Positions 2,303 to 30,396 of a DNA stretch of 33,670 nucleotides are shown here, in pieces. The position numbers were made by a program, and so were the translations under genes. This stretch comes from Ministeria vibrans ATCC 50519 (taxonomy: Eukaryota; Protista; Filasterea). Positions within the stretch are counted from its first letter, which is position 1. Each line of letters opens with the position of its first letter. Location of the stretch: positions 1 through 33,670 of the forward strand of contig CALSCP010002467.1 in NCBI GenBank assembly GCA_943704425.1, written 5' to 3'. A model generated the notes under the pieces. That model made no database searches and had not been told where the DNA came from. It worked only from the letters and a program-made list of their open reading frames with translations.

Positions 2303-3984
2303 TTATTTCTCAATGCCTCTCCGTATCCGCGTCATGTCAATGCGCACACACACACGTGGATGCCACGAGGGAGCTCTGCTGGCAAAACAAAACCTCTTAA
2401 ACTCGGTAAGCTCGTCGTCGTCGTCATCGTTGTCGTCGTTGTTGTCGTCCTTGTTGTTGTTGTTGTCACAGTCATCGACACACTCGCTAGTATTCTGTTC
2501 AGCACTGATTATCTTTTCATCGCCTTGTGAAGCAATACTTTCTGTGCGCCGAACATTTGCAGTCTCCACAACTGCGATATCGACGAGGGCTGCTGGTGAT
2601 TTACTCAAGTCACGTTGTGAAACTGAGTTTTCAGCGCACTTCTTCTTTTCCTCCGCTGAGTTCGCTTGAGCCACAGAATTTGATGTGCACTCGTCGCTCG
2701 CACACTTCTCTTTTTCTTTTCTTGGCTTTACACCGACCTTCTTTGCCTTTTTTGCCTTCTTACGGGCATGAACCGCATTTCCCGCGGATTTTGTCTTGCT
2801 GCCGCCTTGAATAAATGCGACGAGGCTGTCAAGATCACCTGCACAGGCCGGAGCAGGAGTCGTTTCATTGCAGGTGGATGATGTGCCCGAGCACACCTGC
2901 TTCCGCTCCGTCTGTCGACGAGCGTGCGCCAAACGAAGCTGTTCGCGTATTGAGGGAGTGTTTCGCTGTGTTGGGCAAAGTGGGAAGTCTGTCTGACACG
3001 ACGGAAAGCCCGCAAGCACAACGGGGAGCTGTGCCATCGAGCGTGGCAAGAAATTAATAAGGATGTTGGAGAGGTGCAGTTGCTTGAGAGATTGGAGCTT
3101 TCCCATGGAGCTGGGAAGAGAGACAAGTTGGTTGCAGCTTGCATCGAGAGAAACCAGCGTCGTCAGGTTGCCAGTCGACGCGGGGAGCGATGATAGTGAA
3201 TTTTGAGAGAGCTGCAGCTCTGCAATGGCAGGGAGTTGGCCAAGCGAATCGGGGAGAAGAGTGAGCTGGTTTTCCGCAAGATCAAGGACGGTCAGTGACA
3301 GTAATTGACCCACAGAGTTTGGGAGTGACAGGAGACGGTTGTGGCCGAGAAATAGCTTTGTGAGTGATTTGAGTTGGCCAATGGATTCGGGCAGGAACTC
3401 GAGCTGATTGTGGCAGAGAGTGAGCTCTTGCAACGACGTGAGATTGCCGATAGAGGCAGGCAGAACATCGAGGCAGTTGGTGCAGAGCGACAAGTTTGTG
3501 AGTGTGCTCAACAGGCCAATAGAATCAGGCAAGGCCGTTAGATTGTTGTTGGCGATGTTGAGCACAGCAAGTGATGAGAGCATTCCAATGGAAGGCGGCA
3601 AGCGTCTCAGTCGATTGGACGCGAGAATGAGCTTTCTCAAAGCCGCGAGCTGGCCAATAGAGTCGGGCACTGCAATCAGCTGGTTGTGGCAGAGAGTCAG
3701 CTTCTCCATCGTTTCAAGCTCGCCAATCCACGATGGCAGAGTGACAAGTTCGTTGCGACAGAGACTGAGATCCGAGACTTGCGCGAGAGCGTCCAGTTCA
3801 CATGTGGAAATCGTCATTGGCAACTCTCTCACCTGCTTGTTGATGAGGTGAAGTTGATCTCCTTGGCAATGCGCATGGAGTTCTTCTACACAGCAAAAGG
3901 AACAAAAACGACCCGTGATGATTGTGTAAACAAACAACTAACCCTAACCGAGTGAGCCGTACCAATTGAGGGCGAGCTCGTCAT
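2303..3984 (-). CDS. Leucine-rich repeat protein (about 11 23-aa LRRs) with FAM193-like C-terminal motifs
   Basis: Repeats of LxxLxLxxNxLxxLPxSIGxL. Predicted exon 1 3984-3963 (MTSSPSI), phase-1 intron 3962-3886 (GTACGG...TGTAG), exon 2 3885-2303. Tail has DLDSLVAFIQG, a Lys-rich stretch and DDELTEFKRFC. Confidence 0.85.
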
Positions 3985-19103: not shown

Positions 19104-19679
19104 AGTGTTGTTGTTACTTTTTATACTATATATACATAATTATAATTATTTATCTCCTCTCGAGCTCGAGAAATACTTTCACTTGATTTATTTCATTATT
19201 TCCATAGCAACTTAGCAAGTTAGAACACATTCGACATTCGTCTGTCATTCGACAAAATACAAATCAATGTAAAATTGTGACAAATAATAAATAATTTGTT
19301 ATTTAATTGACAGACAAAACTTTTTTGTAGAAAAAAACACGCACAATCCACTGTGACAGAATTGACACGCGAAAGTGTCCAAGCGATTTAGGTCTTGGGA
19401 GGCGAATCAGGTAATGGAGAAAGGCAGAAAATGAGAGAGGGGAAAAATATTGTTTCGTTGTTGCGAAACCGATGCTGCGTGTGTCAAGCTGGACTGCATT
19501 GTGCTGGTGGGGTGGCGGTGGATGTGACGAAGTGTGATTCTGGGCTGTGGTTTGTGACGCGCGAGAGAGAGAGAAAAACAATTGTTTTACGTTCGTTTCA
19601 GTTTTGTCTCGTCGAATTGAGAGCTTCCTTTGGCTCACAGTGCATGTGTATGGCTCATGCCGCACGGTTTCTCCTTCAG

Positions 19680-20207
19680 GAAATGCCGAATGCGCGCTAC
19701 GCTGTCGATGGGGCGCTGTTGGCCTTCAGCGACACGGACGCTCCACAAGTGACGCTGTTCCAGGCGCACCCGGACGGCTCTGAGCGGGTTGGGCGGGCTC
19801 TTGCGACGTGGCACGCCGACCCCTGGGAGATAGCACTCAGTCCCGATGCCCAGTGGCTCGTGGTTGCCTCAGAGACCCCCCAGGCCGTCGTGTTTTCGCT
19901 GGACGAGTTGACCCCTGTCAGGTCACTCACTGGGCATCTCAGGTGAGAGGGAAACCCCCCCTTTCAATCACATACTTTGACGATGGCCCTTGCTTCTATT
20001 GTGTCTTCGATCCTTAACTGTGCAACGCTTTTTTGTTTGTTTTTTTATTATATTTTGATATTTTATTTTGTGCTGTGACAGTTCTGTTCATTCGGTCCGA
20101 GTGTCCCCCGATGGACTCCGAGTGGTCACTGGGTCGAAAGACACGACCATCAAAGTGTGGGAATTCCACAGTGGAGTGTGCACTCTTACTCTTACTGGTC
20201 ACAGTGG

Positions 20208-20303
<96 letters not shown>

Positions 20304-23300
20304 TATCACTGTGTGTGTGGCTTATTTCCATTTGTGTAGTCGCGTCTGGTCTGTTGATTTCCCACCCAATGGACTCAAACTGGTCAGTGGAAGTGCAGAC
20401 CACTCAATTCGAGTGTGGGACAGTCAATCGGGAGAGTGTCTACTCATTCTGAAGGAACACACAGGGTAAGAGCGACTACGATTTGTGGGTCCAACTGTTC
20501 TCTTTTTTTTGCATTTTAGTACTGTCCGATCAGTGAGATTTTCACCCGATGGAACCAAAATATTAAGTGGCTCTTGGGACAACACAATGAAACTCTGGGA
20601 CAGTCAAACGGGAAAATGCGAAATCACGTTTATCGGACATTCACTGTACGCTTGATTGGATTCAAACGCAACACAAAGAACAGAAACAATTTTTGTAGCT
20701 CGGTCCTTTGTGTGTCATTCTCATTTGATGGACAAACAGTGCTCAGTGGATCATCCGACCACACTATCAAAATATGGTCTGTTGTGACTGGAGAGTGTCT
20801 CAAAACACTTATTGGACACTCAGCGTATGTCACTCTATCACTATTCGAGAACCAATCTCTCATGTGCCTCTTTCTTTTGCAGCCATCTGTGCTCAGCAGT
20901 GTTTTCGCCTGATGGTCATTATGTGATCAGTGGGTCAGAGGACTATACTGTGAAAGTGTGGAATGTGCAAACGGAACAGTGCGAAGAGACATTTGAGGAA
21001 CATTCACAGTGAGAAGAATTAACTGCAGTGTGTAGAAAGAGTGAGTGTGTCTGACCAGTCGGTTTTTAGAATTGTTCGCTCAGTCGCACTGTCTCGAGAC
21101 GGAAGCACTATCTACAGTGGATCTGCTGACAAGACAATCAAAGTGTGGACTCGATCCAAAGGAACCATTCGCAAACGATTCCCACTCCCTTCAAAGTGAG
21201 ACAGTCACTCTTTTTGTGTAACACTCATTCCCGTTGTAGAGTGGAGTCGATTGAGTTCTCTTCGGATGGGAAGACACTAATCGCACATTGCACAGACAAG
21301 ACAGATCACAGATGGCCCATGGGCGAGTTCATCACGTGAGAAGCACACTCCAAATCAGACAAAATGACTCTATTGAACTCCCTTTGGGTGTGTGTCTTTT
21401 TCTTTTTCCTTTTTTTGCAGTGCGCTCACGGACAGCAGTGTGTACCAGAAGGCGTTTCTTGCAGCAGTGCAACGAGGCTCAGTGCAGCCACGCACGATCA
21501 AACTGCTGTGTCTAGGGGCAGTGATGGCTGGGAAGACAACCCTGCTACATGCACTGCGCGGACTGACGCTGCCCACCGACGCAGATCGGTCCATTGCTAC
21601 TCGACTGCAGCGACTGCGTCTGGTCTACCGCGGAGACAAGGGCTTCTTTGAGGCTGTACCGCAGGAGGAGTTTCACCTTGCCAGTCTCATTGGGGGACAG
21701 TCTCATCTTGATGTGTCTTCTGCTGCGGGCGCCTTATCCCCACCAACACATCCATCCACAACCACCACGACACTAGACTCCGGCTCATCGTCAGCTCCAG
21801 CCCCCTCGTCCCGCCCTTCCTCACCACTCCCATCGTCCTTGCCACCTTCCTCCCCACTCCCACCCTCGTCCTCTCCCACTGCCTCAGACACGATGCAGGC
21901 GGTGCACACCCTGCTCGAGACTGAACTGCGCGACGGTCACATTGACCTCGAGACATTCGACTTTGCAGGTCAGTCGTCTTGAGCCAAGTTTTTTTTACTC
22001 TGATCCGTTTCTTTCCTCTCTCTGTATCTCCGTACCTTTTAGGCGAAGAGACGTTTGATTCACTCCCTGCACTCTTCATGGGCTCCGAGTCACTGTACGT
22101 GATTGTCTTTGACCTGTCTGTGATGCGCGACACAGCCCCGGCGGAGCGACAGTACGAGCACATCACCAAGTGGGCGCACATCATTGCCCACCAAGTGCCC
22201 ACTAGCAGCAATGCCTACTTCCGCGTCATTCTCGTCGGCACCCACCTTGACACGTTCCCCGACGAGACGGTGCCGGCCGATCTGCTCACCGTCATCTCCG
22301 ACAAGATCCTGCGTCTGGTGGGCTATCTGCTCGGCAACCATCTGATGCGCCCGACCGATGGCTCAAATATGCCCTTCTTCCAGGTGGGCAGCAGCACCAA
22401 AGTGGGACTGGGCGCACTCACTCAAGCACTGCGCGACTCAGTGCGACCACGCACACTACCACTGGAGTATGTGTGTGTGCAGGATTTGCTGGGTCGCGCG
22501 GCACGCCAGAACGCGATTCCTCTTTTGTCGCCCGTGGCACAGTTGGACACACTCGAGCTCAATCGCGACCCATTGATCACACTGTCGGCCCTGCTGCCTG
22601 ACTTGTCGTCTGTGCGCACGGGTCTTGTACCGTACCTGGAGTCTGCGGCGGACATTGTGGTGTGCCGTGAGGATGTGACGGGGCAGACCCTGTGCGACTC
22701 GGACACGATTGTGTTCAACATTCCACGCCTGATCTCAGCGGTGGAGCTGTTGTGCTCGGTGGTGATGGCACGTTGGGGCCGGGCGACGAGTGCACGCGCA
22801 AAGGAGATGCTGGCCAAAGTCATTGCAGCGGGACACAGCGTCGAGTTCCAACAGACTGAGCGAGTGTTGAAGCGACTAGACTCATCTCTCAATCGTGCGG
22901 AAGAAGGATTTCCTCGCGAGGTGGCGGAGTGGCTCCTGTGGACTGCGGCCAAGACGAGGAGTAACGACCCTGTGCTTGTAGGTGCGGACGTGACGAACAC
23001 TGCGGCATTCATGTCGTGTTTGGCACATCTCAATCTGCTGCATTGTCACGAAGACCGTCTGCTGATGCCGATGTTGTTGCCTGAGACTGCGTCTTTTGCG
23101 ACGAGTTTAACTGCCCCATCGGCGGCGGAGGTGTTCCTGTACCAGATGATTACGACGGCGTCTGGGGACTGGGAGGCGCTTCCCGTGTCACTGGCAACGT
23201 TCCATCTGGTGGTGGTGGCATTGTGGCGAGCGAGTCTGCCCGACAGTCCCATTGAGGCAACACAGCGATGTACCAATGCGATGTCGATGGACGGGTGTGT

Positions 23301-24519
23301 GCCAGTGCGACTGCGACTCAACACGGAGGAGACCTTTATTCGAGTTGAGTTGCTCAAGGACACGACTGCCAAGACAGTCGAGATGACGTGGACACGACTG
23401 ATTGAGCGAGTGTGTGAGTCGACGCGGTCACTGCGGTGGGGCTGGCGTGGATGTGCTGTTGTTGTGCCCGCGCATCCTTTTACGACTGACAAGTCGCGTC
23501 CGCTGTTTGAGCCTGAAAAGATCGCTGCACGCCCGATGCACTACCGTGAAATTGCAACGGTGGAGAGTGAGCTTGCACGGTGGACGGGACAGCCAAGCTG
23601 CAATGCGTCTCTGGAGCAGTGGTGGGTCAAGAAACCTCGTAAGAGAAAAATGCAAGTTCGTTTCTTCCATTGATATTATTGTATTATTTTAGCCACTGGC
23701 ATCTACTCGCATGCGTCCGCCCTGATCATTGGGGTGAGTCAGTTCTGCTCCACGGGCAATCCGGCACTGAGTGCGTACCCTGACCTTCCGGGTGTGGCGC
23801 AGAGTGTGAAGTTGCTGGAGAAGATGTGGAGGGAACGTGAGTTTGACGTGGAGACGGTGGTGGACAAGCAAAAAGGACAGCGAGTGACCAAGACGGAGAT
23901 CGTTGCTGCAGCACGCAAGTTGGCCGAGAAGGCTCAGGAGCGTGCCGGGAAGGATTCGCTCCTGATTGTGCATCTAATTGGTCATGGAGTGGACGACAAC
24001 ACAGGCGGTCTTCTCCTGAGTGACGCCTGGACGTCGTGTGTTGGTCATACCAGTCGCTTTACAGTCCGCTCGCTTGGTGACATCTTGCAAGACGAAGCCG
24101 GCTGGAAAGGCTGCAACATTCTCTTATTCTGCGACTTCTGCAACAGCGGCGCACTAATTCAGCCGGAGGAGGAACTGACGATGGACGAGAGCTTTGCTCC
24201 AGTGCAGCGCTACTCGCGACAGATGATCACAAGCTGCATCAAGCGAGTGAAATCTTACATGACATTCAGTGAGGACAAAACGCAGATGACGAAGCTGCTG
24301 CTACGCGCCCTTGACAATTTGAACCCCTCTGCGTTTCGAGACGGCGATGAAGTGCTGAGTGCGGTTGAGCTGCGTCGTCGTCTGCTGACACTGGACCGCG
24401 AGAAAACGTTTCAGTCTGCGCTGATAGGGCGAATTTGGAACGACTGGAGTAGCGGAACCGCCAACGACGGAGACATCTTTCTGTACAAGTACGGAAGTGG
24501 TGTCCGAAAGGAGCCATGA
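19680..24519 (+). CDS. WD40-repeat / Roc GTPase / COR-like / caspase-like (peptidase C14 fold) multidomain Roco protein, about 1360 aa, at least 11 exons
   Basis: Exons 19680-19942, 20082-20207, 20340-20465, 20520-20645, 20699-20824, 20883-21008, 21070-21195, 21240-21335, 21421-21968, 22043-23638, 23693-24519 join in frame via GT-AG introns. Roc motifs: IKLLCLGAVMAGKTTLL, TFDFAG|E, LYVIVFDLS, ILVGTHLD. Protease motifs: ALIIG, LIVHLIGHG, LLFCDFCNSG. The 5' end may include a further upstream exon. Confidence 0.85.
20212..20298. repeat. Compound (GA)n(TA)n microsatellite in a WD40 intron
   Basis: Directly visible. Confidence 0.95.
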
Positions 24520-28585: not shown

Positions 28586-28683
<98 letters not shown>

Positions 28684-30396
28684 NNNNNNNNNNNNNNNNN
28701 NNNNNNNNNNNNNNNNNNNNNNNNNNNNNNNNNNNNNNNNNNNNNNNNNNNNNNNNNNNNNNNNNNNNNNNNNNNNNNNNNNNNNNNNNNNNNNNNNNNN
28801 NCACACACACACAGACACACACACACACACACAGACACATACATACATACATACGTACATACATACATACATACATACATACATACATACATACATACAT
28901 ACACTCACTATACGTTGCATGACCCTCTGTTATAGATTGAGAAGTGGAGCGACTCTCTCGCGTGTGTCATGATCACCTACCCTTCAACATACGGTGTCTT
29001 TGATGAAGGAATTCGCGACATCTGCTCGCTGGTGCACGCACACGGTGGACAAGTGTACCTTGACGGTGCAAACCTTAACGCACAGGTGGGCCTGTGCCGT
29101 CCTGGTGACTATGGCTCTGACGTGAGCCATCTCAACCTCCACAAGACCTTCTGGTATGCACACTCATCTACACAGGCATGTTCATGGTCTGACGCTCTGT
29201 TCGCATGTGTGCGTAGCATTCCTCATGGTGGAGGTGGCCCTGGGATGGGCCCTATTGGCGTGAAGGAACATCTCATTCCCTTCCTCCCGACCCACCCTCT
29301 TGTGCCATTTCTCGGTGGCCCCCAGTCCTTTGGAACCATCTCAGGCGCACCCTGGAGCTCCTCGTCCATTCTTCCAATCAGGTACATTGCTGTTCCTTCC
29401 TATGCACACACATTGCACACGACACACACACACTCAACAACACAATATATACACGCACCACAATACACTATATACCCACACAGAGAGACAAATAAATACT
29501 CACATATACACTATTAAGTTGGGCATATCTGCGTCTGATGGGCTCGAGTGGACTCCGGCGTGCCTCTGAGATTGCCATCCTTAATGCTAACTACATGGCG
29601 GCTCGTCTGCGACCCCACTACCCGATTCTTTTCACCAACCTCAAGGGTTACTGTGCCCATGAGTTTATCATCGATGTCCGCCACTTCCAAAAGACAGCCG
29701 GTGTGGAGGCAGCAGACATTGCAAAGCGACTTCAGGTGAGCACGAGAGAGAGACGGAGACTCAGAGAGAGAATAACAGAGAAGGAGACGCAGAGAAAGCC
29801 ATAGACAATGGACACCTCAATTTGCTTTCTATCTCTCTCTCTTTCTTTCTCTCTCAATGTAGGACTACGGGTTCCATGCGCCCACTATGTCCTGGCCAGT
29901 CACCAACACACTGATGATCGAACCCACTGAGAGCGAAAGCAAAGAAGAAATGGACGTAAGGCAAACATATACCGTCTCTCTCTCTCACTCACCCCCAACA
30001 TCGCACACACACACACTCTCTCTCTCTCTCTCTCTCTATCACTTTGTTTCTTTTTCCCTCCTTTCTCCCTCCTGTTTTTCCCCCCTCCTTAGCGCTACGT
30101 TGAAGCACTGATTAGCATTCGTGAAGAAATTCGCGAGATTGAGGAGAACACGTTTGACCAGAAGAATAACCTTCTCAAGAACGCACCGCACCCACTCGCA
30201 TCTGTTACCGCCTCCGAATGGCCCTACCCGTACTCCCGCGAACGCGCTGCTTATCCCAAGGTACGTCAAGCTGACAGATTATATATGACTGACGGACCAT
30301 TTGTAGGACTGGTTGCGTCGTTCTAAGTTCTGGCCCTCCACTGCCCGCATCAACGATGTCTTTGGCGACCGTCACGTTCAAGCCCGACTCGTCTAA
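26188..30396 (+). CDS. GLDC: Mitochondrial glycine dehydrogenase (decarboxylating), glycine cleavage system P protein
   Basis: Arg/Ser-rich presequence, [67 protein letters not shown] (PLP lysine), [33 protein letters not shown]. Confidence 0.98.
28587..28903. repeat. (CA)n and (TACA)n microsatellites with N gap in a GLDC intron
   Basis: Directly visible; N gap at about 28684-28801. Confidence 0.95.

Follow-up and report, generated by a model that had tools for sequence, protein, structure and literature searches.

One-blade exons in a predicted WD40-ROCO-caspase gene of Ministeria vibrans: probable inheritance in fixed order, with change in top-face residues and whole blocks

Closest described systems

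The LRR-ROCO genes of brown algae (Ectocarpus, Saccharina; PMC3341825, PMC11378527) join a Roc-COR core to an N-terminal sensor made of leucine-rich repeats (LRR). Their LRR exons are 72 bp long and in phase 2, and they come in variable sets and as splice isoforms (PMC11378527). In a second described system, the NWD genes of the fungus Podospora, the repeats are highly conserved and show concerted evolution, and their number is variable (PMC1805685, PMC2873952). The stretch of DNA analyzed here, referred to as the window, is a 33,670-nt contig of Ministeria vibrans ATCC 50519 (CALSCP010002467.1, positions 1 to 33,670). On its plus strand, at 19650 to 24519, it carries a gene whose predicted product shows the domain order WD40 propeller, Roc GTPase, COR-like region, and C14 caspase-like peptidase, and six consecutive exons in the WD40 part of this gene are each 126 nt long and encode one WD40 repeat each. 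We consider it likely that these exons are an inherited relic, with one propeller blade per exon, in a WD40-ROCO-caspase gene that diversifies through its top-face residues and through the exchange of whole WD blocks. The organization of ROCO genes into one repeat per exon was already known; what is new here is the WD40 blades and the caspase output, so that a WD40 case is added to the repeat-per-exon ROCO genes of brown algae. No paper was found in the literature searched for one repeat per exon together with WD40, and the combination of WD40, Roc, COR, and caspase was not found in the literature searched either.

The brown-algal genes had been named as a precedent in an earlier note on this DNA, and the comparison is apt. 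The window gene is likewise a putative ROCO gene, with a Roc-COR core behind an N-terminal repeat sensor and with symmetric phase-2 exons of one repeat each, and its family, like theirs, is multicopy. However, some differences were apparent. First, the brown-algal units are 72-bp LRRs of an open solenoid, whereas those of the window are 126-bp WD40 blades of what would be a closed propeller. Second, exon number and order vary in brown algae, where isoforms are documented, whereas both number and order are fixed in the window family. Third, a caspase domain is mentioned in neither PMC3341825 nor PMC11378527, whereas the window gene has a caspase-like domain.

The HNWD/NWD genes of Podospora anserina (het-e, het-d, and het-r) resemble the window gene in three ways: they have WD40 units of 42 residues, their d-a loop and b-c turn contain the hypervariable positions, and an NTPase switch is joined to a death effector. 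Unlike in the window gene, the NTPase is of the NACHT type and the effector is HET. The repeats of these genes are homogenized and variable in count, whereas the window repeats are only 32 to 54% identical to one another in amino acid sequence, are separated by introns, and are fixed in count; the homogenized units with variable repeat number that mark the Podospora type were not found here. The Apaf-1 apoptosome is similar to the window gene in that a WD40 sensor acts through an NTPase switch that leads to caspase activity, but the switch is an NB-ARC ATPase and not Roc-COR, the WD40 part is C-terminal, and a separate caspase is recruited via CARD. LRRK2, LRRK1, and the Roco protein of Chlorobium tepidum share the P-loop, DFAG, and GTHLD motifs and a COR-like fold with the window gene, at a sequence similarity that is marginal (E values of 0.06 to 1e-4). 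LRRK2 also carries a WD40 domain. That domain is C-terminal and the output of the protein is a kinase, whereas in the window gene WD40 is N-terminal and the output would be a caspase-like protease.

Exon geometry of the WD40 block

According to the earlier note, the gene has six consecutive 126-nt exons in phase 2-2, each with a single WD40 repeat, the introns fall just after the GH/EH dipeptide or its equivalent, and the rest of the gene has few introns. All four of these statements were confirmed. Exons E2 (20082 to 20207), E3 (20340 to 20465), E4 (20520 to 20645), E5 (20699 to 20824), E6 (20883 to 21008), and E7 (21070 to 21195) are exactly 126 nt long, and every one is preceded by AG and followed by GT. 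They are open solely in frame offset 1, which makes them phase 2-2: the last base of a split codon stands at the start of each exon, and the first two bases of the next split codon stand at its end. The 41-codon cores of all six matched the Pfam WD40 profile (PF00400) above its cut-off of 27 bits, with scores of 35.2, 37.3, 42.0, 39.5, 34.8, and 32.1 bits for E2 to E7, respectively; in E7, the lowest-scoring exon, the d strand is divergent and lacks GH. Because the matches span profile positions 14 to 39, the introns lie one residue past the GH/EH dipeptide or its equivalent. In the published arrangement, a WD40 repeat opens with strand d and GH and continues through strands a, b, and c to a closing WD (PMC1805685). 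By this standard strand order, each 126-nt exon would encode a single structural blade with strands a to d. The introns that separate the six exons are 132, 54, 53, 58, and 61 nt long, and the WD block has 8 introns in 1145 nt of coding sequence, compared to 2 in 2969 nt for the remaining gene. The first of the introns between 126-nt exons (20208 to 20339) contains (GA)n and (TA)n microsatellites at 20210 to 20300.

At the same position of the repeat, a phase-2 intron also follows exon 1 and precedes exon 8. Exon 1 (19650 to 19942, with the ATG at 19650 or 19644) encodes an N-terminal partial blade and one full WD-like blade, gave a weak beta-propeller match in a profile search, and ends in phase 2 right after GHL. 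No intron separates its partial and full blades, so that one repeat junction lies within it uninterrupted. Exon 8 (21240 to 21335; 96 nt, phase 2-2) encodes a WD-like partial blade with predicted strands a to c. It showed weak tblastn matches to E4 and E5, is conserved in the paralogs, and is likely the closing blade. A propeller of eight blades is therefore probable: the 126-nt exons would supply six, exon 1 would supply one, and another would be split between the N terminus and exon 8.

The placement of these introns does not look accidental. If introns were placed at random, the chance of finding seven of them at one position of a 126-nt repeat would be about (1/126)^6, and the shared position is thus not due to chance. 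It is what inheritance from a duplicated unit of exon plus intron gives. Alternatively, each repeat could have acquired its intron separately at the same site, for instance at a sequence-specific insertion site. This would agree with the lack of similarity among the introns of the WD block when they were compared with one another and with the intronless first repeat junction inside exon 1. However, seven gains at an identical codon phase and position are very unlikely, the junction hexamers (exon end/start) differ and no common motif was seen among them by eye, and all of the introns are older than the divergence of the family. We therefore regard independent gain as highly improbable and the duplicated exon-plus-intron unit as the better account of the pattern.

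The frame is open and the phases match exon by exon over all 11 exons, and exon lengths and phases, checked in the same way, sum to 1371 codons. The splice sites of the WD exons are all canonical, with clear T-rich tracts ahead of the acceptors. When the window was compared to a colinear contig from a relative (L001), the indels in exons were multiples of 3 whereas those in introns were of 1, 2, 4, and 8 nt, which supports the splicing model. One feature is out of step with the rest of the gene: the GC content at third codon positions (GC3) is 43.5% in the six WD exons (20082 to 21195), whereas the gene's other exons have 59 to 72% and the neighboring GcvP gene has 76%. The gap between the WD exons and the remainder is also present in three paralogs (L002, L003, and L004). 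Such a difference could be expected if the locus were mis-modeled or a pseudogene, with exons not spliced as proposed or the gene dead. This is barely credible, given the open frame with matching phases in all 11 exons, the contrast between exon and intron indels, the conserved catalytic residues of the peptidase domain, and a ratio of nonsynonymous to synonymous divergence (dN/dS) of 0.13 to 0.33 outside the hypervariable positions described below.

Inheritance and diversification of the WD exons

Relatives were found by word searches in which the large exon and the Roc exon of the window gene were the queries; these yielded eleven proteins at the level of open reading frames (ORFs). The DNA of ten of these was compared, as ten contigs, of which nine are from ENA metagenomes labeled SCHR19-1 and a tenth is from a Logan run; the remaining protein comes from a JGI sample. 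A scan of the JGI metagenome with the family profile found no relative. The family is multicopy, with at least seven lineages, and its copies are dispersed in the genome, since a CBS-domain gene lies downstream in the window but a CAP-Gly gene in L002. WD exons in the relatives were located by a hidden Markov model scan of all open windows between AG and GT. Every relative covering the WD region has exon 1, six phase-2 exons of 120 to 132 nt (multiples of 3), and exon 8, and the phase-2 end of the first exon is found at one and the same place in all paralogs. A good example of this is L002, in which exon 1 is followed by six 126-nt exons and exon 8. The six middle exons of L004 are 126, 126, 123, 129, 126, and 132 nt long. 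Those of L003 are 129, 126, 126, 126, and 129 nt long up to an assembly gap of Ns (2139 to 2238), and an L003-like contig, L010, supplies E6, E7, and E8. A loss of E7 in L003 was considered and rejected, as its apparent absence is this assembly gap. Three further contigs (L001, L005, and L009) are partial and consistent with the six-exon layout. In one relative, the Roc exon runs upstream in frame into a Cullin-like segment (L007, 298 to 1185; PF00888, E value of 6e-6, below the cut-off) at the place where the others have exon 8. This fusion could reflect either replacement of the N-terminal module or an assembly chimera.

The earlier note had seen in these frame-compatible exons a cassette for shuffling, and here the data went against it. 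The proposal would be that exons are actively shuffled, duplicated, and deleted within and between paralogs to give new sensor combinations, as in the brown-algal LRR-ROCO genes. Several features fit, namely, the phase 2-2 symmetry with one blade per exon, the multicopy family with its at least seven lineages, a ROCO core as in Ectocarpus, and the recombination of the family at the block level. Within L004, two exons (x1, 1402 to 1527, and x5, 2121 to 2246) are also 63% identical, above all other within-gene pairs. However, no relative covering the region deviates in the number or order of its exons; the window gene, L002, L004, and the L003/L010 combination all keep the six middle exons in order. 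Identical exon order in relatives is the outcome that the note itself had listed as speaking against its proposal. In other words, the family has one repeat per symmetric exon, as expected of an exon-shuffling receptor, but not a number or order of exons that varies among paralogs. A closed propeller is much less tolerant of a changed number of repeats than an LRR solenoid is, which is a further point against shuffling.

The phylogeny of the single exons, which the note had suggested as a check, gave grouping by position and not by gene, with no signal of shuffling. Positional counterparts in other genes are 63 to 85% identical in amino acid sequence, compared to 34 to 53% for neighbors in the same gene. 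In a maximum-likelihood tree of 30 exons, E2, E3, E5, E6, and E7 of the window gene (W), L001, L002, L003, and L010 fell into position clades with 96 to 100% support. The position label required 8 changes on this tree (minimum of 5; mean of 19.8 after shuffling of the labels; as low in 0 of 200 shuffles), and the gene label required 23. The extra changes of the position label all came from the long-branched exons of L004. In addition, no near-identical exons were seen. The repeats within the window gene share 42 to 60% nucleotide identity, and their third codon positions are near saturation (41% identity). No shuffling, copy-number change, or concerted evolution was found among the relatives covering the WD region, and active shuffling is thus very unlikely. 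The clustering by position, the age of the repeats, and the unrelated introns place the duplication of the exon-intron units before the radiation of the family. From then on, these units appear, from these comparisons, to have been inherited in fixed order and number.

A different use of the same exons would be alternative splicing, in which the exons are constitutive in evolution but single blades are skipped in some transcripts, giving different propeller isoforms. Any skip of a 126-nt exon would preserve the frame, each exon holds both predicted top-face loops of one blade, and such isoforms are shown by the brown-algal ROCO genes. An extra WD-40 repeat also distinguishes isoforms of Apaf-1, according to Benedict et al. 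(2000, PMID 10722681). Against it, the splice sites are all canonical, with clear T-rich tracts before the acceptors, and the blade count is fixed across paralogs, which argues that the full set is needed. On balance, we think skipping not likely. Quite unlikely, too, is a broader version, in which this would be an undescribed protist family of ROCO-caspase switches whose one-blade exons serve as units of skipping or of blade-wise conversion. If it were true, the recognition face would be recombined one blade at a time, in addition to the changes at single residues and the exchange of blocks.

Diversity was found within the exons, at a few positions. Positional counterparts differ above all at exon positions 1, 3, 19, and 21, where the pairwise difference fractions are 0.6 to 0.9, and position 38 is likewise variable. 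In HET-E, positions 7, 9, 25, and 27 are under positive selection (PMC1805685). Positions 1, 3, 19, and 21 have the same spacing as these and the same location on the top face (d-a loop and b-c turn), and the chance that all four would be among the five most variable of 41 positions is about 5e-5. The proportion of nonsynonymous differences (pN) at the hot positions was 0.56 to 0.72 in five of the six gene pairs and 0.27 in the L001-L002 pair, compared to 0.07 to 0.10 elsewhere; in five of the six pairs, it exceeded the proportion of synonymous differences (pS) of the remaining sites (0.26 to 0.39). Thus, the diversifying change at four top-face positions known from Podospora was also found here, in a small sample with partly saturated codons. 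The view of the block as a sensor, also put forward in the earlier note, is supported by this concentration of replacements at HET-E-like positions, few and partly saturated as the codons are. The spacing and loops shared with the WD40 repeats of fungal NLR proteins suggest, by analogy, a convergent use in the recognition of non-self or danger.

A second source of diversity was seen at the level of blocks. Positions 1 to 3324 of L001 are colinear with 20466 to 23774 of the window, introns included, but identity changes in a sharp step, from 65 to 89% upstream of about position 21870 to 90% or more downstream of it. The large exon is 93.4% identical, and the noncoding stretch that follows it is 95% identical. 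Synonymous divergence (dS) tells the same story. For the WD exons, it was 0.43 to 0.49 in every pair of W, L001, L002, and L003 (0.49 for W-L001), whereas for the large exon it was 0.19 in the W-L001 pair and 0.85 to 1.1 in the other pairs. Quartet-informative sites in the large exon favored the grouping of W with L001 (111/11/7), compared to 5/7/10 in WD exons E4 to E6. Because dS and quartet sites disagree between the WD exons and the large exon, the sensor and switch blocks have different genealogies, and there has therefore been recombination or gene conversion between family members. On sequence grounds, the breakpoint is placed in or near the insert of the Roc domain. This insert, a Ser/Pro/Thr-rich segment of low complexity at 21700 to 21880, lies between the P-loop region and DFAG, and its length and sequence are different in every paralog.

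Roc-COR core, caspase-like domain, and neighboring genes

Downstream of the propeller, the first half of the Roc GTPase is encoded at 21421 to 21968, in an exon that contains the P-loop (GAVMAGKT), the variable Ser/Pro/Thr-rich insert, and DFAG and ends in phase 1. The large exon (22043 to 23638, with a predicted donor at 23639; 542 aa) encodes the second half of Roc, including GTHLD, and the COR-like region. Searches of the PDB with single sequences gave marginal matches only, and the Pfam Roc profile was weakly matched by the L007 counterpart of the Roc exon (E value of 0.058). In a profile built from the large exon and eight relatives, the first ~90 residues aligned to the second half of LRRK2 Roc, with GTHLD included; together with GAVMAGKT and DFAG, the G1, G3, and G4 motifs of a Roc domain are accounted for. 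An exhaustive search of 1.84 billion representative proteins with the profile returned just 7 at an E value of 0.001 or below. Three distant matches of this search are Roc or Roc-COR proteins (P0012 to P0014, which carry Pfam Roc). An AlphaFold2 model of the large exon was then the query for Foldseek. All 14 of the 14 matches at an E value of 0.001 or below were structures of LRRK1, LRRK2, or C. tepidum Roco/COR, ranks 1 to 26 were all Roc-COR (best E value of 4.7e-7), and the isolated COR domain 3dpt was among the matches (E value of 2e-5, TMt of 0.42). A COR region directly after Roc was thus recovered by Foldseek on a model with a predicted local distance difference test score (pLDDT) of 68.6, with no Pfam COR-A or COR-B match. 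Because of the alignment to LRRK2 Roc, the distant Roc and Roc-COR matches, and the Foldseek structures, the protein is filed as a putative ROCO with a predicted N-terminal WD40 propeller and C-terminal caspase-like effector. The latter is encoded by the last exon (23693 to 24519, with the stop codon at 24517 to 24519), which matched the peptidase C14 profile PF00656 at 30.7 bits (cut-off of 21.4). The His of GHG and the Cys of DFCNSG, the dyad expected of this family, are invariant across five paralogs.

From these parts, a history and a way of working can be proposed. The propeller would have been built by serial tandem duplication of a single-blade exon with its intron, before the family radiated, and exon number would have been fixed since then, as a propeller must close. 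The sensor would diversify by replacements at the four predicted top-face loop positions of each blade, and whole WD blocks would be exchanged between paralogs by recombination, with no exons reordered, duplicated, or lost. The propeller may bind a ligand, upon which the GTPase switch would change state or oligomerize and the protease would then be activated, making the protein a possible one-polypeptide analogue of the apoptosome or of an NLR-type death or immune switch. In this gene, the structure would still mirror the units of the propeller, exon for blade, which fits the growth of propellers by amplification of single blades. The closed fold seems to have frozen the number of exons, and diversification seems to have moved to surface residues and whole-block exchange. 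Sensor, switch, and protease would be combined in one chain that has only a handful of relatives among the 1.84 billion representative proteins.

Several points weigh against this reading. The exon model was put together from splice signals, frame, and conservation, and the blade count and the closure of the propeller were read from the separate exons rather than from the joined protein. Pfam gave no match for the 542-aa large exon and called neither Roc, COR-A, nor COR-B in the window protein, and the model of the large exon is of moderate quality (pLDDT of 68.6, with Foldseek TM-scores of 0.2 to 0.4). The high identity of x1 and x5 in L004 could come from an old exon duplication or conversion, or these could be two consensus-like repeats. 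The variability at the hot sites could partly reflect relaxed constraint, the codons being few and near saturation. Finally, the loci compared are derived from metagenomes, in which orthologs and paralogs are not separable with certainty.

The other genes in the window are of varied kinds. An LRR gene on the minus strand (2303 to 3937) is a single uninterrupted ORF of 544 codons, and repeat genes at this locus are therefore not generally built with one repeat per exon. No further WD40 gene was found within the window. The remaining neighbors encode an fn3/EGF protein, a ZIP transporter, Anp1, a CBS-domain protein, GcvP, a Fes1-like protein, and G-patch proteins. The best matches of the flanking GcvP gene, at about 60% identity, were to zygomycete fungi and uncultured protists, with no named brown alga among the matches listed; the best named ones were Mucorales fungi, followed by two protist transcriptomes of EukProt, Colp12 and Opistho-2, none above ~60%. 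At about 28600 to 28900, the GcvP gene is interrupted by a (CA)n tract with a run of N, which is a scaffold gap.

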